From the sequence record OR836606.1: a stretch of DNA of 64,000 bases; one strand, given 5' to 3'. The first letter of the stretch is position 1; each line of letters begins with the position of its first letter. The position numbers and the translations under genes are program-made. The notes beneath the pieces are model-generated. The model worked only from the letters and a program-made list of their open reading frames with translations, was not told where the DNA came from and made no database searches. Of this stretch, positions 12,924 to 46,645 are shown piece by piece.

Positions 12924-15900
12924 TTGGCTAGAAATAAAAAATTTAACACTAGTAAGATAGAGAAGGAGTTTAGAAATAACTCCTCCTCTAAATCTTCTAG
13001 AAAATATATAGATACTGAATTTAATAAAAATTTAAATAATATAAATTCTAACGATATGAAACGTATGATGGATCAAAACAATCCATTAAAAGCAGTTAAA
13101 GAATTAAAGAATAAAAAGAAAAAGCAACTACAAAAGATAAGTGAATCAACTAGAGATTTATCTAAAGAAGCTTTAGAATCTACTAAAAATACCTTTAAAA
13201 CTGGAGAAACAATTCAAGATAAAGGATCATTAAAAAACTTCAATAGTATGGGTATGGATTTCAGTGGAGATTTTGAAGATTTTAGTTTTGATGATAGTTT
13301 TTCAGATATAGATTCCGACATAGATAATTCTTTAGATGATGGAGATTTCAAATTTGATGACTTTGATAAGGAAGATGATAATAAATCTAAAATAGTGTCT
13401 TCCACAACAATTATCAATAATGACGGTTCTTCTGCTAAATCTACAGCACTATTAACTTCTTCTGTTTCTAATCTTTCTCAAATAAACACTACTGGATTTA
13501 CTTCTATGATTAATAACCTTAATTTAATGAGGGAAGCTAATGATAATATTAGAGAAAGTATGTTCCAGAACTTAAACGGATTAATTCAAACTAGTAATGC
13601 TATTAGACAAAATACTAAAATTAAAAATATATCCGAAATAAAGAATAGTAATTCATTAGAAGACTTATTTTTATCAAATATAACTTTATCAAATATATTA
13701 GAAGGATCTCAAGAAGAAGGATTTAAAGATAAAGCTAAAGACTTCATCAAAAAACAAGGAACAGAATTACTTAAAGAAGTTATTGGTTCTAAAAAACAAG
13801 GAATTAAAAGTTCAGGTTTAGTTGATTTAGCTAAAGGTAAAGCTTTTGATTTCCTTAATAATGAAGATACTTTTATAGAGAAAGCGGTTGGCAAATTTGC
13901 TAATAAAAAACTTAGTCCTTTTAGAGATAATGATAATGGTACTAAACAAAGGAAAAGAGATAAAAGAAGAGATGATTTACTTGAAGACGTTAAATTAGGT
14001 AAAAGCAAGTTAATTGATAAAATATTTGATAATGTAACTGGCGGTATATCAACTGCTAATAAAAAAGATAGAAATCAAAAAGTTGCTTTTGATGTGGAAA
14101 CTCATAATACAATTAATACAGTTATCCCTGGCTATTTATCTAAAATAGTTGGTTTAACTTCAGAAGATGGTCAAGAAATCCACTATGATTATGATTCAGG
14201 TTCTTTTAAAACTTCCAAATCTATTAAAAATGATATAGAAAAAAGAGTTAATAAAACTATCAAAGAATCTAGTTTTACTAAAGAATTTGAAAATATGGCT
14301 TCTGAAATGGGTATTGATCTGTTTAATAATGAAAGTAATAAAAATAAAGCCACATCTAAAATTAAAGAAATTATTTCTAGAAATATTAACAAAAGTGATG
14401 AACTTGATCAAATTAAATCTAATGACCCAAATGACCCATTTAATATTCTTCTAGATAAAATATTTAATGATAAAGAAGCTAAAACTAGTTTAACTAAAAC
14501 TAGAATGCAATTAAATAAAGAATCTAAAGATATTAAGAGAAAATTATCGGGTAGTTCTATAAATGCTCTTAATGACAAGAGTAAAAGAAAAGGTACTTCT
14601 AAAAATATTACATCCAAATTAAGTAATGGAAATAAAAGTGGTATTCTTAGTACTAACAAAGATACTTTATACGATAATATTAACTTTAATATCGTTAATA
14701 GAGATATAAGTGAGATCAAAAAGATTGTTTCTAGAATAAATAATAAAATACCTGAGAAAAGATATAATAATTCTAACGATAGTAAGTCAAGTGACTTTAT
14801 TAATAATACAAATCAATCTAATGATAATATTTCCAGAGAAATAGATCCTAGAGAGCAAACTTTAAACCAAAATACTTCTTCTAGATCAAATCAGAATAGA
14901 GAATATGATAATACTAAAAATGGAGATAATGGATCTACTATTATTCCTAATGAACAAATTTTAGAAGATGGACAAACAAAATCGTCTGAAAGTTCAGATA
15001 ATAAAGATTTTATAGATAGAATAGAAGAAGCTCAAGATCTTATCGATAGCAATAAATATGTTAAAGAGAAATTTGACAAATATAAAAATAAAGGTAAAAA
15101 CTTTGCTAAAGAAAAAATAGGTAAATTGTCCAATACTAAATTAGGTAGTAAAATAACTAGTATGGGCGGTGCTTTAACTGGTAAATTTGCTGCTGGCGGT
15201 GCTTTAATGGCAGGTGCAGGTAGTAGACTTAAAGGAAAACTTAAGGCTAGAGCTACTAGAATGGCTGCTGGAAAAGGTACTAAAAAAGCTATAGGTAAAG
15301 GATTACTTAAAGCAGGTTCTAAAGTAGGTGCTCGTGTTGGGTTAAATGCTATTCCCGTAGTTGGACAAATTGCATCATTAGCATTAGCCGGTCCAGATAT
15401 TATTAGAACAATAGCCAATCCAATAGAATCGTTAAAACATCCAATTAAAACATTAGGTAGTATTATTGGTTTCAATGACCACCCTTCTAAAACTAAAAAA
15501 GAACAAGAAAAGTTAGATTCAACTCAACCTGGCGGAGAAAATTTTGCAATTGATCCTTTAGTTGATACTAAAATGAATGGATCTATAGATAAATCTTCAA
15601 TTATTGGAGATTTTATTAAAGATAATCCATTATTAGCTTCCACTCCTTTATTAGGATTAGCAGGAATGGGTTTATATAAATCAATTGTAAAACCGGCATT
15701 CGGTTTAGGTATGAATATGGTTCAAAAAACTACCGGTATGGCTAAGAGTTTTGGAGATCAAACTGATATGGCTATGGAAGAGAAAACAAGTGGCTTTGGC
15801 GGTTTGATTAAAAAAGTTGTCGGCGGTGCTTCTATGTTAATGATGGCACCTTTGGCATTGGCTGGTAAAGGTTTAAGTAATTTAACTGGTATGACTTCAA

Positions 15901-26743: not shown

Positions 26744-26962
26744 TTATTTTAAACTTTCTTCCATTATTCTTAAAACTTCATCCTTAAATTCATCAGGTAT
26801 TTGGTTCCAATTAATTATCTCATGAAATAATAAGAATGACAAATAAGGAGGATATTTCTTTTTATTAAAGTTAAACTCAATAAATGTTAATACACTTCTA
26901 GATAATTTAAGTAATACTTTTGATACTTTCCAGAATATTTCCATAATATATTTCACTTCCAT
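26744..26962 (-). CDS. Hypothetical protein
   Basis: 72-aa ORF adjacent to 26966-27712. Confidence 0.5.
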   Translation of the reverse strand: MEVKYIMEIFWKVSKVLLKLSRSVLTFIEFNFNKKKYPPYLSFLLFHEIINWNQIPDEFKDEVLRIMEESLK

Positions 26963-28975: not shown

Positions 28976-31339
28976 TTATATACTACAGCTTTCACATTCA
29001 ACAATACCTTGAGAACTTTCATCATGATCAGGTGAATAAATACGAGTATAATACATAGATTTAATACCTTTACTATAAGCATAGTTACGTAATCTACTAA
29101 TATCACGAGTAGTAGTTTCTTTATCTAAAGAATCTTTTTTCCATTCATAAAGTTCTGGATCAAGTTCATTCATTAAGTAAATATTCATAGAAATACCTTG
29201 ATCTACGTGATATTGAGCTTCTGAATATAAATCAATCATATCTCTCATATCTAATTGGTAAGCATTTTTCTTAAAGTATTCAAAGTTGTCTGGTGTAATA
29301 CCTGGCGCTGGATAGAAAGTAGTGCCTGTTTTACCTTCTACACGTTCTTCAATTAACTCAACAATAGGATGAATTGAAGGCGATACTTCTCTAACATAGC
29401 CAATAGACCCATTAGGAGCTACAGCTAATCTATTCTGATTGTATAAACCATCCATAACAATATTATTTCTTAATTGTTCCCAATCGCTATCAGATGGAAT
29501 AAAAATGTCTTTAAATAATTCTTTAACTTTTTCAGTACGTGGTTGAATATTTTTACCAATATAACGTTTATCAAAATAAGAACCATCAGCATATTCAGTT
29601 TTCTCAAATAAATAGAATGATTCATTTTTCTCTTTAGCAATTTTATTTGATTCAACTAATGTCCAATAATTTAATAACATGAAATAAATATTAGTGAAAT
29701 CTTTAGATTCTTCAGAACCATATTGAATGTGGTTTTCAGCTAAGAAAGTGTGTAATCCCATAGCACCTAAACCAACTGTATGAAATAAATCATTTCCTTT
29801 TTTAATTGTAGGTACAGCTTCGATATTAGATTTTTCAGATACTGAATTTAAACTTCTTAACATAGTTCCTACTGATTTACCAAAATCTTCCGATTTCATT
29901 AAACCGGATACAATAGTTGAAGCTAAGTTACATGAAATATCTGTTCCTGTTTTAACATATTGTTGATTATCATCAACTAATGAAGGATATTGTACCTGCA
30001 AAATTTCTGAACACAAATTACTCATTTTAATTTTACCATGACTGATTGGATTAGCTCTATTAGCTGTATCAATATTAATGATATAAGGATATCCAGATTC
30101 TTGTTGTAATTTACTAATTGTGGTTTCTAAATCACGAGCATACATTTTATCTTTACTAATACGTTTATCATCTACAAAGATATCATAATAAGTATTAAAG
30201 TCAATACTGTCGAAATCCAAATCGTAATATTTTTTAATGTCATATGGGCTAAATGTATATAATGATTTATTTTCTTTAACTAACTGATAATATTTGTCTG
30301 GAACGGTTAAACCTAATGAAATAGTTTTTAATCTCACTTTCTCATCAGCATTTTCTTTCTTAGTATCTAAGAATTTCACTACATCTTTATGGAAAATATT
30401 TAAATAGAGCGCACCTGCACCATTACGTTGCATTTATATTAACTATATGAATTTCATATAGATTAGACTATATCTTATACTTCTAATAAGTATTATTATA
30501 TTTAATCGTTGGACAATCATAAAGATTGATGCTGATTAAGTTTATAAACTTTTCCAGCAATTAATAATATTTATACTGAGCCATTAAAATTAACCCAGTT
30601 GATTTACATATGATAATGTATCTTCAAATACTTTCATAACCGGAACTACTCCTGAAGCGGCACCTTCTACACCTTTAATTGGATCATTATCTGCACGTAG
30701 ATTTGATAAACTGATTCCACAGCCTCCGCCTCTTTTACTTAATTGAGCTACGTTAGTAACAGTTCTATAAATTGAAGCTAGAGAATCTTCCATTGTAACT
30801 AAGAAACAACTTATTAACTCACCAGAACGTTTTCTACCTGAATTGAGAAATGTCGGTGTAGCGGGTTGGAAAGTTCCTGTAATGATTTCTTTAGCGATAT
30901 TCTTAGCTAATTCTTCATCTCCATCAGCTAAATATAAAGCTACAAATAAAATTCTATCTTCATATAGTTCTAATAAAATCTCCCCAGCATCATCTTTCAT
31001 TGCATACTGTTCATAGAATTTTTTAGCCCCCAATAAGCGAGTAAATCTATGCTTATAAGCCATTAATTCTTTCATTAATCCTTTAATGAACTCAAAATCA
31101 TAATTATTGATCATATCGCCATCAATATAATCATTATCAACTAGATAATTAATTTTTTCTTTATATGTTTTAAAGTATCTTACATTCTTATTAACTGAAT
31201 CTAAGAAATATTTTTTAACTGAAGCTAATTCAAATTCTAAATCTAAATTACCGTCTTTTAATTGTGACCCTCTTGAGTTTAATTCGTTATATGAATAATC
31301 TTTAAATTTTTCTGAAGTTAAATCAATTTCTTTTGGCAT
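28976..31339 (-). CDS. nrdE: Class Ib RNR alpha subunit, spliced: join(30593-31339, 28976-30430), 733 aa
   Basis: FQPATPTFLN, SCF, SNLCSEI, CNL, VAPNGS, KSMYYTR, C-terminal CESC; splicing gives YVNQLG|QRNGAG. Confidence 0.92.
30431..30592 (-). ncRNA. Minimal group I intron (162 nt) in nrdE
   Basis: Exon ends in U, intron ends in G; P1 ACUGGGU/GCUCAGU with U.G at the splice site; core AAUUGCUGGAAA, AAUCAGCA, CAACGAUUAAA, AAGAUAUAGUC; removal restores the frame. Confidence 0.9.
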
Positions 31340-34796: not shown

Positions 34797-37700
34797 TTAA
34801 TCTAATAGATTCATTATTCTTTTTGATTTCTGATCTGGAGAAGAATTGTTATTCTGTAATAAAGGATTACTAGGGAGATTACCATCAATAATTCCACTAA
34901 TACGTTTCATGGATGCAATATCTTTTCTTCTAGCTTGTCTTTCTTTTTCAATTTCTTCTGCATTATCTCCATCTGCAGATACCATTGAACCGTATTTAAC
35001 TTTAACAAATTTCTTAATGTCTTTCTCATAGTAATAAGCATATAAACAAAATAGATAACTCATAAGTAAATCGTCATGTCCGCCATCAGGGTGATCAATT
35101 CTACCTTTTTTCATTTGAAGGGATTTTATTTGTTGGAATAATGGTTTATTATTAACTAAATAAGGTTTTTCTTCAACAATCATTGATAAAATTTCATTGA
35201 GCATTAGATCTGCTATATAAATTCATGAGTTTAATTTAATTAAAATGAATTTATTCGACTTCGTCATCACTCTGACTTACTTTGCACTTTAAGTTTTTTC
35301 GTTATAAACTACTTCAACAGAAAGCTTTAATCAAAGCAGAGGTTAAAGCTCTTAAGTCATCGCATTTGGACATTTAGAGGAATAAGACCTCATTTAGCCT
35401 GCCCAACAAAACGCTTACCATACAGTTTTAAATTGACAGCAGCGTTATAATCTCTATCCATTTTATGTCCACAATCACAGGAATACCATCTATCTGATAG
35501 TTTCAACTTATCTTCTTTAGTTAGAATTTGGCCACAATTAGAACATAATTGAGTTGATGGAAACCATCTGTCAGCTACAATAATAGTATTACCATTGCTT
35601 TCAGCTTTTTGTTCAAGTAAAGTCCTAAACTGTCTCCAATTGGACTGTGCGATTGATTTGGATAGTTTTCTATTTTTAATCATATTTGAAACCTGTAAAT
35701 CTTCAATAGTTATATATTGATAATTGTTAATCAAGTTAGTAGTAATCTTATGAAGATAATCTTTTTTAATATTATTAATTCTATACCATACTTTTTGTAT
35801 TTTGGTTTTCAATACATTGTATTTATTAGAACCATAAACTTTTTTAGATAATCTTTTTTGGTAGTATTTGATTTTATTATAGAGTGAGATTAGTTTATTA
35901 TTTAATGAATGGTATTTTTTAAATTTACCGAAATCATCATTAATAATAGCTAAATCTTTTACACCTAAATCAATACCTACATGACTATTGTTATGAATTA
36001 ATTTTTTACTGTTATCAACTTTCATTACTATCGAAGCGAAATACCTACCAGCATATTTGGATATAGTTACTTCTTGTATAGAATTATAATCTTTGTTTAA
36101 AGGTTCTTTCATTTTAATTAATGAATTTACACCACGCAATTTAAGTTTATTATTTTTCTCACCTTTAATTTGAATAGCGTAAGGATCTTTCCTATAGAAC
36201 CTTGCTCTTAATTTAGATTTCTTTTTAGATTTAAATTTAGGATATTTACCATATCCTTTCCACATCATATTAAATGCTTTACCTAGATCTTCTGTAGAAG
36301 TTTCAATTATCATGATAATTTGATCTTTCTCCCAATCTTCTTTACATTTTTTAAGTTCATCACGAACTCTACGATGAGTTGGTTTTGGTAAAGATTTATC
36401 AATTTGATAATTATTCCACATATATTTCCATTTATTAAGTGCCTTGTTATAAATATAACGACTATATCCAAAAGCTTGATTAAATATCTCTCGTTGTTCT
36501 TTATTAGGTTTCAATTCGATTTTTATAGATTTGTACATGTGATTTTCACCTCGATTCATATTTCTAAATGATTTAGAATTTATAATTCATTGTTTAATAT
36601 ATCGAGGTAAAAATTATTTTAATTAAATTAAACTCACGAATTCCAGAAATCCCTTTCAGGTTCTGTTAAATAGCAAGACTATATCATGATCCATTAAATC
36701 AATGGACCCCTCGCACTTCGAAAAACTTCTGATGAAGTTAATCTACTCTACTCACTTCACATAGTATTTCAACTATGCTTATTCAGGTTAATCAAACCTG
36801 TGCTTTCGATAGTCGTTGAACGTTTATCCATCATGTGGACACTTCGCTGCTAGACTTCCCATTGTTTACAAACTTTAGCGATCTAGGGTTTTCACCTAGA
36901 CTTGTTTTCAGCATAGTTCATCTTAGAGATTTTTTCTGTCTTTCGACTGCATGTCACGCTATCCATTACTGGCATACGTTGTAGCTCTCTAAGCTTTAGG
37001 GTTTTACAAGCAATTCACGAGGTATTTTTACCACTAATTTCATGAATTAAAATTAGTTTAATTTACTTATATAGTAGCAGAGCGTGAAACATGAATTAAT
37101 AAGAATTTAAGTCTTAATTCACTTAAAATATCTTAAATTAAAACTGTTTCGTTACTCTAGATTTTTTAGTTGTATCAATACCATATCTTCTTACTTGTTT
37201 GGTAACTTTATTAGTGCTATTTCTAGGAATTTCATTAAATACTTGCTTATTAACTTCAACTTGTTTTTCTGCTACTCTATTCTTTAATGAGTAGAAAATA
37301 TTGTCTCCAATACCATCAGTTTGAATCATATCTTCTATCATTACAGTACCTGCATAGTTACGTTCAGGTATTAATACTGCATTAGGTATATAAAGCGTAA
37401 TAAGTTCTTTAATTAATTTTCTAAAAGTAGGTCCATTAATTACATTATTTTGGAAAATCATTACAGGCTCTAATGTACCTGGATCAACTACAGTAAATGC
37501 AGTATTATCTCGACCAAGACCACCAGATATATCAATACCAACAAGCCAGTTCTTTTCATGCATATTATCCATCTTTTTAACCATATAAACATAATAAGTT
37601 TTACCATTTATTTTAAAATCAATAGTATTATATATCTCTTTATTTGCATATAATGATAATTCTGACATTTGTTGTTCATCAAATAAAGAATCATCGTTAC

Positions 37701-39379
37701 TAAACGCCCATTCAAGAAGTATCTCACGTTTAACTGCTTCTAAAGAACCAATTTGACGTTTTTGCTTTTCTAACCAAGCATCATCTTTACCTAATTCTTT
37801 ATATGAATATTCTATATAGATGAATGAATTGCCTGAATTACTTTCCATATACTCTTCTAATTTTTCATTACCCTCTTCTTCAGAATTAATGTAATAATCA
37901 TATATTTTTTCTGTCCATTGTGCTGCATCATTCATTTGCTCAAAGAAGAACTGTCCTTGAGGTACATCCAAAGTACTCATATTTTTTATCCTATATTAAT
38001 TTAATATAGATAAGACTATATCTTAGTATATTATAATACCATTTATTATTTAGTCGTTAAACAAGTATTATCAACTTGATGCTGATTGTCTTAATAAAGA
38101 TTTTCCAGCAATTAAATAAATAAGCCCAGTTTAATTTTAGGCGTTGTTGTAATTAGAAGACCATAAGGTGTGCCATTTTTCTTAGCTATTGCAGATGCTG
38201 TAGAAACTGCCTTTTAATATTAATCTACATGGATTCCATATAGAATAGACTATATCTTAGTATTATATTAATACTATTTATTATTTAGTCGTTGAACACT
38301 ATAAATAGCGATGCTGATCGTCTTAATAAAGATTTTCCAGCAATTAAATAAATAAGCCCGCATTAATTTCAGGCCTCATTGCTTCAAACATTGTTTGGTT
38401 GTGTGGAATGAATGCCCACTCATCCAACCAGACCATAGGTCATTATGTTAACTATATTTAAAAAATATAGATCAGACTATATCATACTCATATAAATAAG
38501 TGAATATATTTAGTCGTTGAACACTATAATTAGTGATGCTGATTAAGATAATAATCTATTCCAGCAATTAATATTCTTTTACTACTGCAACTATCTACAG
38601 TAGAACCACGCTATTTTAGACTATATCTTCAATTTTATAATTGTCTTTTATTTAGTCGTTGAACACATATGTGATGCTGATCAAATTAAATAATTTGTCC
38701 CAGCAATTAAAAAGATTTATAGCAAGCCATGATATTAACCTGCTTTATTTGCACTCTCACTGTTAGTCGGAGGTGAAACTGTTTTAATAGTATTGTTATT
38801 ACTAGCTAATTGAAATTCGTTGATCTTATCTCTATCATTTTTATCTCCAAAATTAGCTAATACATATTCAGGTAAACATTTCTCTTTAAATAAGTTTTTA
38901 AGACGTTTTAAGTTCTCAGTTGTATCTGAATAAGATTTGTGTGTAAATAACATTGTATAGTTACTACCTACTAATAACATTATCCATGAATAATAACATA
39001 CTGCTGAATATGTTTTATAGTGCTGACGTGGAAGCATTATAGCTGTATCTAAATTGTGTAACATACAAAATGTCATCGCCATATTACCTCTATGAAGTTC
39101 ATACATAACCTTACCGCCAGGAACAGGAACTCTTATAACTTCCCTTAAATAAAACCATATATTAATTTTAGCTTCCCTTAATACACGGGTTTTCATTTCA
39201 TCAGAAAGTTCAGGATCCCAAGGATCTACTCCTACAAGATTTTTATCATATAGAGTTAATGGAATCCCATAATTTCTGACGTTGTTCTTCTTAAGATCCC
39301 TAGCCACTCTTAAAAAACTAACATTATTAGTTTTATAATCGTAATAAACTTTTTTCTTTAATTTTGGTTTAATTGTCAT
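34797..39379 (-). CDS. terL: Terminase large subunit in six exons: 38738-39379, 38597-38610, 38371-38440, 38139-38210, 37155-37977, 34797-35209 (677 aa)
   Basis: Walker A LPRQHYKT; splicing gives KAG|RGSTV|PMVWLDEWAF...MRP|AVS...ITTTP|STL...KKSR|DLML; nuclease motifs GIDISGG, ERN, HDDLLM; exon total 2034 nt is divisible by 3. Confidence 0.88.
35210..35400 (-). ncRNA. Putative TnpB omega-RNA scaffold (guide would extend into terminase exon 6)
   Basis: Structured non-coding right end after the tnpB stop (AAGAGCTTTAA/TTAAAGCTTT, TGACTT/AAGTCA); position follows known TnpB biology; 5' boundary approximate. Confidence 0.6.
35390..36538 (-). CDS. tnpB: TnpB RNA-guided nuclease (IS200/IS605/IS607 family), 382 aa
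   Basis: HTH N-terminus IKIELKPNKEQ; RuvC GIDLG, IEDL, DRDYNAA all intact; CSNCG/CDCG zinc finger; GAGGTG SD favours ATG at 36538. Confidence 0.92.
   Translation of the reverse strand: MYKSIKIELKPNKEQREIFNQAFGYSRYIYNKALNKWKYMWNNYQIDKSLPKPTHRRVRDELKKCKEDWEKDQIIMIIETSTEDLGKAFNMMWKGYGKYPKFKSKKKSKLRARFYRKDPYAIQIKGEKNNKLKLRGVNSLIKMKEPLNKDYNSIQEVTISKYAGRYFASIVMKVDNSKKLIHNNSHVGIDLGVKDLAIINDDFGKFKKYHSLNNKLISLYNKIKYYQKRLSKKVYGSNKYNVLKTKIQKVWYRINNIKKDYLHKITTNLINNYQYITIEDLQVSNMIKNRKLSKSIAQSNWRQFRTLLEQKAESNGNTIIVADRWFPSTQLCSNCGQILTKEDKLKLSDRWYSCDCGHKMDRDYNAAVNLKLYGKRFVGQAK
36548..36608 (-). promoter_or_regulatory. Hairpin sequestering the tnpB SD, with an internal late promoter (36583-36594)
   Basis: ACCTCGAT pairs with ATCGAGGT, which contains the SD; AACA ATGAAT TA lies between the arms. 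Confidence 0.65.
37978..38138 (-). ncRNA. Minimal group I intron (161 nt), terminase intron 4
   Basis: After ...ACGCCU, ends AUG; P1 GCCU/GGGC; AAUUGCUGGAAA, AAUCAGCAUCA, UUUAACGACUAAA, AAGAUAUAGUC. Confidence 0.88.
38211..38370 (-). ncRNA. Minimal group I intron (160 nt), terminase intron 3
   Basis: After AGGCCU, ends AAG; P1 AGGCCU/GGGCUU; full core motifs. Confidence 0.9.
38441..38596 (-). ncRNA. Minimal group I intron (156 nt), terminase intron 2
   Basis: P1 CUACUGU/GCAGUAG with terminal U.G; ends AUG; full core motifs. Confidence 0.9.
38611..38737 (-). ncRNA. Minimal group I intron (127 nt), terminase intron 1
   Basis: P1 AGCAGGU/GCUUGCU; P4 UGCUG/CAGCA; P5 CAAAUU/AAUUUG; P7 GACUA/UAGUC; P8 CAAUU/AAUUG; ends UAG only 8 nt after P7. 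Confidence 0.88.
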
Positions 39380-39398
39380 ATTTATTTCAACTCACTTT

Positions 39399-40562
39399 CT
39401 ATACATTTAATCTATCTGATTTTTTAATTAATGTTTGAATATCAGAAAGTTGTTGTTTTAATTCATTTTTAACTTCTTTATCATTATTAGGGTTACTTAT
39501 TTCAAATTTTAATGTTTTAATAATAGCTTCAATTGAATCCGTTGGATAGTCTCTATAGTCTCTAATAAACAATCTACTTGGATATAATAATTTCCTAACA
39601 ATTTTACCTAATAAAGTTTTACCTTTTTTATTTTCAGATTTAGTTCTAAATGATTTGTATATGATATCATAAAAATTTATAATTTCAGTAGAATAACCGT
39701 ATAACGTAGGTAACTGATTAGCCGATCTTTCTGAAAGGTTGTAGTTCATTTTACCCACTCTTTCATTATCTAAAAGATTTAAAGTTACATTAGCTATAAA
39801 AGAACTGCCTAACACCAGTGGTAATACTCCTGTCAATGAAGTTAATCCAGCAACTAAAACTGTCATAGCTATAATCATAGGACCTGCGAATTTTAAATTT
39901 CTAGTTGTATCAGATTCAATGTCCTTAGTATACTGAAATTGAACTGGCTTGTTATCTTTATATTTTAATTCAAAAGCGGGTTCTTTTCCTTGGCTTAATA
40001 CTTTAATTTCGATAGGTAAAAATAGATTATGTCCCATTTCATGCAATAATAATGCAGTACACATTCTTTCATTAAAATTACTAAAAGTCACTTCTTTAGA
40101 AGATTTTTTCTTTTCTAAAAAGTATCTTATTGAAGATAACTCAATAAATACCTCAATTTCCCTAGGTTTAGCGTAATGTATACCATTTTTCTCTTCCATA
40201 ACTATTTTTGTTATGCCATCAATAGTATCTCTTATTTGTTCTGGCTTAATTAAAGTATAAGCCACTGATCTTACTCTAAATTTATCTTTACCTTTAGGAT
40301 CAGCTTCAACAAATTTTAATTGCATATTAGCATTAAATAATTTTTTAGTAATTTTAGAAATATTATTAGCTATTTTATTTATTTCATGTTTATCAATTAA
40401 ATCAAATTCAGATTTATCGAAATTATAGCTATCTAATAAAGTTTTAAATTCTTCATCTATTTCTCTAAGTAATGAAGTATTTTTACTGAAATTAAAAGCA
40501 TCTTCATTAATATTCATTATTTTATTAATTTTATTCAATTGGCATTCTTTTCGTAAATCCAT
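39399..40562 (-). CDS. HExxH zinc-metallopeptidase-like protein with hydrophobic segments
   Basis: LLLHEMGH, downstream SERSA, hydrophobic stretch; paralogue of 40590-41696. Confidence 0.6.
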   Translation of the reverse strand: MDLRKECQLNKINKIMNINEDAFNFSKNTSLLREIDEEFKTLLDSYNFDKSEFDLIDKHEINKIANNISKITKKLFNANMQLKFVEADPKGKDKFRVRSVAYTLIKPEQIRDTIDGITKIVMEEKNGIHYAKPREIEVFIELSSIRYFLEKKKSSKEVTFSNFNERMCTALLLHEMGHNLFLPIEIKVLSQGKEPAFELKYKDNKPVQFQYTKDIESDTTRNLKFAGPMIIAMTVLVAGLTSLTGVLPLVLGSSFIANVTLNLLDNERVGKMNYNLSERSANQLPTLYGYSTEIINFYDIIYKSFRTKSENKKGKTLLGKIVRKLLYPSRLFIRDYRDYPTDSIEAIIKTLKFEISNPNNDKEVKNELKQQLSDIQTLIKKSDRLNV

Positions 40563-40589: not shown

Positions 40590-41696
40590 TTATATATCAG
40601 GTGTTAACCTATCAGACATTTTTATTAATTTCTGAATGTCACTAATAGTTTTCTTTATTTCTTCTTTAGTTTTAGCATCATTATTACTATTAGATAATTC
40701 TTTTTGTAATATTTTCACATTACTCTCTATTATATCTGTTTCCCAATCTTTATAATCTCTTATAAAAAGGTTGAAAGGATATAATAATTTATTTTTAATT
40801 TTATTAATTTTACTGTTGTTATATATTGGTGGTTTACTACCTTCTAATTTATCTATCTCTCTAACTATTATTGTAGTTTTAGTTAATTCTCTAGCATAAC
40901 CATATAAATTAGGAAGATAATCTGCAGTTCTTTCAGTTAAATTATAATCTTTATTATTTTTATTTTTCTTTATATTTCTGTTTAAAAAAACAGTTGTAAC
41001 CATTCCACTTCCGATACCTATAGGTGCATTAACAATACTTAAAAAGATAAAGAATAAAGTCATAGCAGATATCATAGGTATAGCAAATTTTTTATTTCTT
41101 TTTTCATCTTCTTCAATATCTTTTGAGTAAGAAAACATTTGAGGTGGATTATCTTTATATTTCAATTCAAATTTAGGAGTTTTTCCTTTATTAAGTACAT
41201 TTAATTCTAAAGGTAAAATTAAATTATGTCCTATTTCATGAAGTAAGACTGAAGTTAATAAACTTCCATCAAATAGATTGTCTATTATTTTATTTTTACC
41301 TTTTAATAAAATACAGTATCTTATAAAGTTTAACTCCATATCAACTATTATTTTAGTCGGTTTAGCATAATATATCCCATTTTTTTCTTCAGAGACTATT
41401 TTTAATAATCCCAATGCTATATCTTTTGCTTGTTTTTCATTCCATCTTGTTTGACCTATGAAATTACATGAATAATATTTAGAATCATTCAATTCTAAGA
41501 AATTAAATCTCAAATCAGTGTTAAATAATTCATTACATATTTTCTCTATTTCTTTTTCTTTATTTTTAAAATTAAAGTCAATAAATTCTTCTTTATTAAG
41601 ATCATATGAATTTATTAATTCATTAAATACATTATCAATTAATTTTAGCTTATTCTTATTTTTACTATTAATAAACATATCTTCGTTAAGAAGCAA
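40590..41696 (-). CDS. HExxH zinc-metallopeptidase-like protein with hydrophobic segments
   Basis: VLLHEIGH, downstream TERTAD, hydrophobic stretch; tandem paralogue. Confidence 0.6.
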   Translation of the reverse strand: MLLNEDMFINSKNKNKLKLIDNVFNELINSYDLNKEEFIDFNFKNKEKEIEKICNELFNTDLRFNFLELNDSKYYSCNFIGQTRWNEKQAKDIALGLLKIVSEEKNGIYYAKPTKIIVDMELNFIRYCILLKGKNKIIDNLFDGSLLTSVLLHEIGHNLILPLELNVLNKGKTPKFELKYKDNPPQMFSYSKDIEEDEKRNKKFAIPMISAMTLFFIFLSIVNAPIGIGSGMVTTVFLNRNIKKNKNNKDYNLTERTADYLPNLYGYARELTKTTIIVREIDKLEGSKPPIYNNSKINKIKNKLLYPFNLFIRDYKDWETDIIESNVKILQKELSNSNNDAKTKEEIKKTISDIQKLIKMSDRLTPDI

Positions 41697-45283: not shown

Positions 45284-46645
45284 ATGTCTAAAGATATAAA
45301 AGCTTATCTTATTAATGAATCTAACACAACTTCTCAACCAGAAGTAGTTCAAGATAATAATAAATCGGTTAGATTCATTGCTGAGTTACAAGAAGCTGAT
45401 AGACAAAACCGTAATGGTCGTGTTTATCGTAAAGATGTTATTCAAAGTGGTTTAGATAGTCCAGTAATACAAGAAAAATTAGCAAGAAAAACTTTTTATG
45501 GTGAGTTTTAGGTTAAATGGCTCACATTAAATTATATTAATTGCTGGAAAAGATTATTATCTTAATCAGCATCAACTTAATACAAGTTGTTCAACGACTA
45601 AATATATAGCCTAGATGATATAGTCTAACCTTTATTAAAATGATAAAGAATAATAATTTGCAGGACATCCTTTAAGTGATGAACCTAAACGACAAATGTA
45701 TATTGATCAACGTAATATTTCTCATATCGTTACTAGAACATGGTGGAATGGTAATAAATTAATGGCAGAAGTAGAAACGGCACAAACAGCAGCTGGTAAA
45801 GATATGAAAGGTTTAATCGGACAAAAGTCTGACGTATCTTTCTCAATGCGTGGTTTCAGTAAAATTAATAGAACACCTTCTGGCGAAGTTGAAGTTACTA
45901 AACCTTTAAGATTAATCTGTTAAATTGTAGCAGCTTTATATAGAAATATATATTGAAAAAGAATATTAATTGCTAAGAAGTTTAATTAAGCCAATTAGCA
46001 TCAACTTAATACAAGTTGTTCAACGACTAAATATATTTACTCTTAATAAGAGTATGATATAGTCTAATCTTAATAGTAAGATCTATTAAGTTAATATAAT
46101 GTACGATAAAATAAACCTTGTCGCTTCTTAAAGCAATTTAAGAATGATAAAACTATTAATTGCTAAAATCTTTTATTAAAGTAATTAGCATCAACTTAAT
46201 AAAAGTTGTTCAAAGACTAAATATAGTTTATCCTTTTATAGGATAATGATATAGTCTGATCTATATTATACTAATATAGATAACATAAATGTGGGTAGTA
46301 ATTCCATCTCATCAAGATTCTTACATTCAAAATATTATTTCAGAAGGACACAATAATTATAATCCTAATGATTTACAAATGGTAAATGAATCAATTGATA
46401 TGTTCACTAATGGTAAAATTACTGAATTTTCTCCTAGAGAAGTTTTAACTTATATTAAAGAAAATTCAGATAATGTAAAATACATTGCTGAAGATATGGG
46501 GTTTGCTGGAGTTGATGAATCTAATATCAGTTATGATAAAGGATCTCAATTAGCTTCAATTAGAGAAAGTAATAAAACTATTAAAGTTTTCTTAGAAGAA
46601 TCTGTTCTTAATGGACTTGATGATTTCTATAGAAACTTTAAATAA
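45284..46645 (+). CDS. Prohead core protease (T4 gp21-like) in four exons: 45284-45506, 45661-45920, 46102-46107, 46292-46645 (280 aa)
   Basis: NRNGRVY; splicing gives GE-S-GHP; ISHIV; SFSMRG; IC|YD|WVVIPSH; exon total 843 nt is divisible by 3. Confidence 0.9.
45507..45660 (+). ncRNA. Minimal group I intron (154 nt), protease intron 1
   Basis: P1 GUGAGU/GCUCAC; AAUUGCUGGAAA, AAUCAGCAUCA, GUUCAACGACUAAA, GAUAUAGUC; ends UUG. Confidence 0.9.
45921..46101 (+). ncRNA. Minimal group I intron (181 nt), protease intron 2
   Basis: P1 CUGU/GCAG; compensatory P4 UGCUAA/UUAGCA; R and S elements; ends AUG. Confidence 0.88.
46108..46291 (+). ncRNA. Minimal group I intron (184 nt), protease intron 3
   Basis: P1 CGAU/GUCG; P4 UGCUAA/UUAGCA; GUUCAAAGACUAAA; GAUAUAGUC; ends AUG. 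Confidence 0.88.

Follow-up and report, generated by a model that had tools for sequence, protein, structure and literature searches.

An extremely reduced, probably functional 127-nt group I intron in the large terminase gene of Staphylococcus phage LY01

Group I introns are a main model of RNA folding and catalysis, and the production of circular RNA from permuted introns is based on them. The Azoarcus tRNA-Ile intron has retained P2 and P9, the loops of which dock on P8 and P5. The introns of phages Twort and T4 measure about 250 nt or more without their open reading frames (ORFs) and are extended by domains like P7.1/P7.2 or P9.x; the engineered sunY "miniribozymes" are reportedly small versions made by laboratory deletion. 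With 205 nt, the Azoarcus intron is the benchmark of a small group I intron (PMC13168695), and in Twort several introns share one gene (reviewed in PMC3984707). The "degenerate" introns of fungal nuclear SSU rDNA (Phialophora, Porpidia, Arthonia) have 56–81 nt and keep only P1, P7, and P10; one of them, PaSSU, was spliced in vitro (PMC3160393). No usable statement on the smallest size of a group I intron was found in the literature or in reviews. Here we describe a 127-nt insertion, designated I1, in the large terminase gene (terL) of Staphylococcus phage LY01. It lies in a stretch of 64,000 nt (the window) that forms the final 64 kb of the LY01 record (OR836606.1). I1 is very probably a functional, extremely reduced group I intron. 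An earlier note, made from the letters of the window, had proposed such an intron at positions 38611-38737, and these coordinates proved exact on the minus strand.

LY01 is a 259-kb jumbo phage of the PBS1/AR9-like type that infects Staphylococcus, and window positions 36900-39400 are 100% identical to its record. Its relatives are the phages MarsHill, Madawaska, Machias, PALS_2, S6, UFV_DC4, AH12, PB50, and SA1. The terL of the last of these (vB_StaM_SA1) is intact and uninterrupted over 677 codons, and the SA1 TerL protein served as tblastn query against the window to map the LY01 exons:

34797..39379, minus strand: terL (large terminase), six exons and five inserts (I1–I5)
39379..38738, 38610..38597, 38440..38371, 38210..38139, 37977..37156, and 35210..34797, minus strand: the terL exons, from tblastn with SA1 TerL
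38611..38737, minus strand: I1, group I intron of 127 nt, identified by the tblastn exon map, Rfam family RF00028, the covariance model (CM) R2, and canonical helices
38597..38610, minus strand: exon 2, a micro-exon of 14 nt, CGUGGUUCUACUGU (R-G-S-T-V), identified by tblastn and the joined ORF

The tblastn match of exon 1 stops at 38738 (...AAA GCA GGT, K-A-G) and that of the next exon begins at 38610 (CGT GGT TCT ACT GT, R-G-S-T-V), so that the insertion point of I1 lies exactly between Gly214 and Arg215 of SA1 TerL. Once I1–I5 are removed, the joined exons form a 2034-nt ORF free of internal stops, which equals SA1 terL in length and is identical to it at 609 of 678 positions (90%). Since the exons flank I1 exactly and the ORF is restored, the splice site GGT|CGT is exact. 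The earlier note had predicted this same junction, which is borne out by the intronless SA1 allele, the restored ORF, and the covariation of P1 and P10 in AH12 and Madawaska (see below). Across the spliced junction, the predicted TerL peptide would read ANKAG-RGSTVPMVWLDEWAF. Micro-exon 2, which is kept in MarsHill and Madawaska, is used twice: I1 forms P10 with its first 5 nt, and the following insert I2 forms P1 with its last 7 nt. Skipping of this exon would put terL out of frame.

The GenBank record of LY01 contains terL as fragments only, each labelled "hypothetical protein". For MarsHill-like phages, intron-split genes have been inferred from protein alignments, but TerL could not be reconstructed by the authors (Korn et al., 10.1101/2020.12.14.422802). 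Both circumstances would fit a decayed, non-splicing I1 in a terL that is a pseudogene or is expressed in fragments, yet we consider this very improbable. The conserved segments RGSTV and WLDEWAF (Walker-B-like) are encoded by exons 2–4, which at 14, 70, and 72 nt cannot work as proteins of their own, precise removal of the inserts gives the full-length ORF, and compensatory changes preserve P1 and P10. Moreover, TerL is indispensable to tailed phages, in which it serves DNA packaging, and the essential nature of the host gene, already pointed out in the earlier note, holds. LY01 and MarsHill were independently isolated and have complete genomes and named hosts. That two such phages keep I1 in an essential gene, together with exons of 14, 70, and 72 nt that are nonfunctional alone, strongly, if indirectly, indicates that I1 is accurately spliced in vivo.

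I1 begins with UAAUAUCAUG and ends with AAAAUAG, its terminal G (38611) directly preceding the CGU GGU of exon 2. Helices P1, P3–P8, and P10 can all be drawn with canonical pairs only, in agreement with the earlier note, which had listed P1 and P3 through P8. They are distributed as follows:

38738..38744, minus strand: P1 5' strand, AGCAGGU (last 7 nt of exon 1), with U38738 in the U·G pair at the 5' splice site
38728..38732, minus strand: P10 intron strand, UCAUG (intron 6-10), whose partner CGUGG is formed by the first 5 nt of the 3' exon (38610..38606)
38721..38727, minus strand: internal guide sequence, GCUUGCU (P1 3' strand, intron 11-17); P1 is also present in the unconstrained minimum free energy (MFE) fold
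38710..38715, minus strand: P3 5' strand, UCUUUU, pairing with AAAAGA at 38644-38649 (6 bp)
38675..38705, minus strand: P4-P5 domain with P4 UGCUGG/UCAGCA, P5 CAAAUU/AAUUUG, and loop AUUU, including the P and Q consensus elements
38664..38673, minus strand: P6, 3 bp (CAC/GUG) with a 4-nt loop, placed by the family alignment; 5–6 bp in relatives
38653..38659, minus strand: P7 5' strand, A(C)GACUA, inside the R element GUUCAACGACUAAAU, matching the Rfam consensus
38630..38643, minus strand: P8 hairpin, CAAUU-AUAA-AAUUG, 5 bp, canonical pairs
38611..38629, minus strand: J8/7 and P7 3' strand (AAGAUA-UAGUCU, S element), followed by AAAAUA and the terminal G; P9 absent

Numbered within the intron, P3 comprises positions 23-28/89-94, P4 33-38/58-63, P5 41-46/51-56, P6 65-67/72-74, P7 79 and 81-85/115-120 with C80 bulged, and P8 95-99/104-108. 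P1 (AGCAGGU/GCUUGCU) has 7 bp, the last of them the U·G wobble of the splice site, and P4 and P5 appear in MFE folds. The conserved blocks of group I introns are represented by AAUUGCUGGGA (P), AUCAGCAUC (Q), the R element given above, and AAGAUAUAGUC (S). In the 6-bp P7 (A(C)GACUA/UAGUCU), the bulged C80 adjoins G81-C119, and this G-C pair is the presumed guanosine-binding site. The core is thus complete, with the P3/P7 pseudoknot, P4-P5-P6, P8, and the joiners J3/4, J6/7, and J8/7 all present. Two peripheral elements are missing, as the earlier note had stated: only UAUAA (intron 18-22, 5 nt) separates the P1 3' strand from P3, leaving P1 to run straight into P3 without a P2, and P7 is followed by AAAAUA and G127, a total of 7 nt that leaves no room for a P9. 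A pseudo-P9 formed by the intron tail and exon 2 was rejected, as its UAG/CUA pairing amounts to just 3 bp and would tie up the terminal G. I1 has a G+C content of 27% and contains in-frame stop codons.

These elements suggest how I1 could be spliced. In P1, the exon end AGCAGGU would be bound by the guide GCUUGCU, which places the U·G pair at the cleavage site, and an external guanosine docked at the P7 G-C pair beside the bulged C would attack after U38738. The terminal G (38611), tethered 7 nt after P7, could then take over the same pocket, while P10, formed by CGUGG of the 3' exon and UCAUG, would keep the 3' exon beside the guide. Ligation of the exons would yield ...K-A-G|R-G-S-T-V....

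Other phages carry introns at the same site. The 127-nt intron of MarsHill differs from I1 by two substitutions, in the P6 loop and J5/4; its identity to I1 is 98.4%, compared with 83–93% for the flanking exons. AH12 has a 206-nt relative after Gly214 that includes P9, and the relative in Madawaska has P9 as well and carries the ORF of a homing endonuclease within its P1 loop. P1 covaries with synonymous changes at the third position of the Ala codon (GCAGGU/GCUUGC in LY01, GCGGGU/GCUCGC in AH12, GCCGGU/GCCGGC in Madawaska), and P10 covaries with the Arg codon (CGUGG/UCAUG in LY01 vs. AGAGG/CCUUU in Madawaska). At the four small-intron sites of LY01 (38738, 38597, 38371, 38139), the last exon nucleotide is always U, whereas intronless SA1 has A at two of these sites and G at one. 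This difference may be a mark of co-conversion, or of intronless alleles resisting invasion. Across these phages, introns have inserted into terL at six sites or more, which makes the gene a hot spot. At least five of them lie within about 60 codons around WLDEWAF, and a sixth follows codon 540 (Madawaska, PALS_2, PB50, AH12). Site occupancy is different in every phage, and homing-endonuclease ORFs are found in some of the introns and not in others.

I1–I4 are mutually related, and they belong to a larger family. The R...S core pattern AACGACTAAAT-N(10-40)-GATATAGTC occurs six times in the window and in none of 100 shuffles. The covariance model R2 was built from four members, with P7 left unpaired and counted separately as a pseudoknot. 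It detects 34 family copies in the whole LY01 genome (E<=1e-4), including I1 with 76.4 bits; eight of the copies are in the window. Ten further copies were found in the terL regions of MarsHill, Madawaska, AH12, and PB50. The fold was tested on a 44-row alignment with P7 added as pseudoknot, using partners slid by 1–3 columns and shuffles as controls. The family fold pairs 95.8% of the cells (28–45% with slid partners), 27 of its 42 pairs show compensatory changes, and the covariation score reaches 0.438, compared with 0.05–0.08 for slid partners and 0.115 for shuffles. Covarying helices are P3 (seven of eight pairs), P5, P6, P8 (five of five), and P9 (seven of eight). P4 and P7 are nearly invariant; the guanosine-site element A(C)GACUA/UAGUCU of P7 is the same in 43/43 rows. 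Because indels put P3, P6, and P8 out of register in a MAFFT alignment, RNAalifold retrieved no more than P4, P5, and P7 from it.

The numerous similar copies in one genome resemble miniature DNA transposons (MITEs), and TnpB elements do occur in LY01. I1 could hence be taken for a mobile DNA element rather than an intron, or for a gap bypassed by ribosomes as in T4 gene 60, but either explanation is exceedingly improbable. Terminal inverted repeats and target duplications were not found for I1, what is conserved corresponds to the group I elements P, Q, R, and S, the covariation fits an RNA pseudoknot, and the guide sequence follows each local exon. In addition, I1 has in-frame stops, and its 127 nt are far above known bypass gaps.

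Within the family, I1 stands out by its 3' end. Of the 43 rows that extend to this region, 41 have P9, an 8-bp stem with conserved CUAUAU...AUAUAG sequence, and the two exceptions are I1 and its ortholog in MarsHill. The lack of P2, on the other hand, is common, as P1 leads directly into P3 in many members. Those without P2 have estimated lengths of 142–165 nt, and I1 is the shortest of the 34 LY01 copies by about 15 nt. Most likely, I1 derives from an intron resembling those that AH12 and Madawaska carry at this site, by deletion of P9 and of a loop that bore an endonuclease. The family copies in LY01 split terL, nrdE, the prohead protease gene, the gyrB region, and other genes. A scan of IMG/VR for the R...S pattern yielded 119 loci, which are group I introns generally, and only four of 100 loci searched match the family model (E<1e-5). 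DNA similarity searches with I1 gave matches in six Staphylococcus jumbo phages only, and the close family thus seems confined to these phages.

Several observations weigh against I1 as a functional intron. RF00028 yields no match in the LY01 window at the gathering threshold and default filters, and none in a relaxed scan of 5 kb. When relaxed filters are applied to 811 nt, I1 is matched over the full length of the model with 42.1 bits (E=3e-9), which is under the curated gathering cut-off of 50 bits; in the same scan, I3 obtains 47.8 bits (E=5.7e-11) and I4 26.5 bits. The shortfall of I1 arises because P2 is deleted, P8 is shortened, and the P9 positions can be filled only with exon sequence, and all 34 LY01 copies likewise escape Rfam at default thresholds. 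The thermodynamic fold is not significant either (z = -1.5 with exon flanks, -0.5 without), shuffled sequence reaching predicted energies that are no worse. That I1 is 98.4% identical in LY01 and MarsHill could mean recent exchange instead of constraint. The 44-row alignment was fitted to the model and is thus biased towards its structure, although the slid controls and unaided RNAalifold (P4, P5, P7) agree with it. Finally, the lack of P9 and P9.0, the 3-bp P6, and the low G+C content make efficient unaided catalysis uncertain. The case for I1 is therefore comparative and not energetic. On the strength of the exon map, the Rfam and R2 matches, and the covariation of P1 and P10, we nevertheless regard it as very probable that I1 is a functional group I intron.

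Whether I1 acts alone is a separate question, on which its interest hinges. P9 and P9.0 usually help to place the 3' splice site and to stabilize the fold. As judged from its sequence, I1 may be an autonomous, guanosine-dependent self-splicing ribozyme and then the smallest natural group I intron with a complete P3–P8 core, a reading that is plausible but falls short of being probable. The weak fold of I1 and its constant place 14 nt upstream of I2, with which it is associated in LY01 and MarsHill alike, make dependence on a cofactor or neighbor possible. It is thus a serious, if tentative, alternative that I1 is real and spliced in vivo but needs a helper for folding or for its 3' splice site, either an RNA-binding protein of phage or host or I2 itself. 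Such help would be in line with the fold being no more stable than shuffles and with the high conservation of P9 sequence in the other 41 rows, which suggests a role that I1 has lost. A shared cofactor would be economical for 34 related introns in one genome, and protein cofactors are needed by many natural group I introns (PMC2813881). However, no candidate cofactor was identified, the core elements, P1, and P10 of I1 are all intact, and the Azoarcus intron shows how active a small core can be (PMC13168695). The conservation of I1 above that of its neighbors is also what would be expected of an intron with little redundancy of its own.

The remaining inserts of terL are located downstream of I1:

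38441..38596, minus strand: I2, related group I intron of 156 nt with P9 (R2 106.6 bits; P1 CUACUGU/GCAGUAG)
38211..38370, minus strand: I3, related group I intron of 160 nt with P9 (R2 139.8 bits; Rfam match as above)
37978..38138, minus strand: I4, related group I intron of 161 nt with P9 (R2 and Rfam matches), lacking in MarsHill
35211..37155, minus strand: I5, insertion of 1945 nt with a larger group I-like core and a TnpB gene (36559..35390)

The core of I5 is larger and more G+C-rich than those of the small introns and has R- and S-like motifs. The TnpB gene that follows it encodes the Pfam domains OrfB_IS605, Cas12f1-like_TNB, and HTH_OrfB_IS605, and is enclosed by a 33-nt inverted repeat. 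IStrons are group I introns fused to an element of the IS200/IS605 family (PMC4227781), and by its sequence I5, but not I1, looks like one, combining a group I-like core with a subsequent TnpB inside a coding gene. It differs from IStrons in that Rfam gave zero matches on I5 and that its splice junction is ambiguous (AGA|G...CA|G), with an exon -1 nucleotide that would be G. A full copy of I5 (81% identical) is present at L130:35340..33432, L127–L130 being labels of LY01 genome pieces outside the window, and partial copies consisting of TnpB only or the ribozyme only occur elsewhere.

Further family members lie in other genes of LY01:

30431..30592, minus strand: family member of 162 nt in nrdE (R2 121.3 bits), whose 5' part, with P1 directly into P3, is closest to I1
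45507..45660, plus strand: family member of 154 nt in the prohead scaffold/protease gene, without P8 and with P9 kept; junction backed by contiguous homologs in PALS_2, SA1, and DC4
45958-46102 and 46148-46291, plus strand: two more members in the prohead protease gene (R2 77.6 and 90.4 bits; CM match coordinates)
L128:15165-15294, 14404-14536, and 1075-1204; L129:31689-31822; L130:32762-32892, 15609-15741, and 26784-26916: members without P8 outside the window

Together with 45529-45660 of the intron in the prohead scaffold/protease gene, the last group makes up eight members devoid of any P8; in these, about 5 nt (CUAAG) lead from the P3 3' strand to J8/7, and P9 is kept. That introns which seem functional and lie in essential genes should lack a core helix is no less odd than the absence of P9 from I1. 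Between the major capsid gene and terL, two tandem paralogous ORFs (39399-40562 and 40590-41696, minus strand) encode 387 and 368 aa. They form DNA repeats of approximately 72–74% identity, and both contain an HExGH motif (LLHEMGHNL and LLHEIGHNL), a zinc-metalloprotease-like signature. A tRNA scan found no tRNA genes.

A natural and maintained full-core intron of 127 nt would lower the size limit for full-core group I ribozymes. If I1 is autonomous, P2, P9/P9.0, and a full P6 would be dispensable for accurate two-step splicing, and the family would represent a natural deletion series for minimal ribozymes and for compact circular-RNA or trans-splicing scaffolds. The comparative series is at hand, as the sister introns differ by whole-helix deletions. 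The family also has consequences for annotation: as standard Rfam thresholds miss it, the LY01 annotation shows terL and further essential genes in fragments, the TerL of MarsHill remained unreconstructed, and the related phage DC4 was reported intronless, no introns having been found by Rfam in the UFV_DC4 phage paper. With 34 mini-introns plus TnpB-bearing introns in 259 kb, LY01 bears an unusually heavy intron load. MarsHill-like phages reportedly plaque and propagate poorly at 37 °C (10.1101/2020.12.14.422802), and AT-rich mini-introns in essential genes might be heat-labile and contribute to this plaquing failure.

The AR9/PBS1-like phages AR9, MarsHill, Madawaska, and Machias share putative intron targets with LY01, namely terL and the genes for the prohead protease, RNA polymerase subunits, gyrase, and ribonucleotide reductase (RNR). 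Korn et al. neither classified nor folded the inserts of MarsHill-like phages. No description of the 127-nt intron, the 14-nt exon, or the family structure was found in the literature covered, which did not include the AR9 genome paper. Like LY01, Twort (orf142, nrdE) and T4 (td, nrdB, sunY) carry group I introns in essential or DNA-metabolism genes, and nrdE and terminase are targets in LY01 as in the phage introns reviewed in PMC3984707, but I1 has no detectable DNA similarity to the Twort and T4 introns. The Azoarcus intron resembles I1 as a compact bacterial intron that has no ORF and few peripheral domains and possesses P1, P10, P3–P8, and a terminal G. It is, however, 78 nt longer and G+C-rich, while I1 is AT-rich, resides in a protein-coding gene of a phage, and has neither P2 nor P9. 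The suggestion in the earlier note of a near-minimal natural core holds among introns with a whole P3–P8 region, given the distance of I1 to the Azoarcus intron and to its 33 relatives in LY01, but not for group I introns at large, as the fungal degenerate introns are smaller. The latter share with I1 that they are natural, very small, have P1, P7, and P10, and were proposed as a group I minimum, but they are devoid of P3, P4-P6, and P8 and rely on the 3' exon. Of the group I introns with a complete core for which we found evidence, I1 is the smallest, and this describes it best; since it keeps the complete canonical core with P, Q, R, and S, it belongs at the small end of the "complete" group I ribozymes and is not a remnant.

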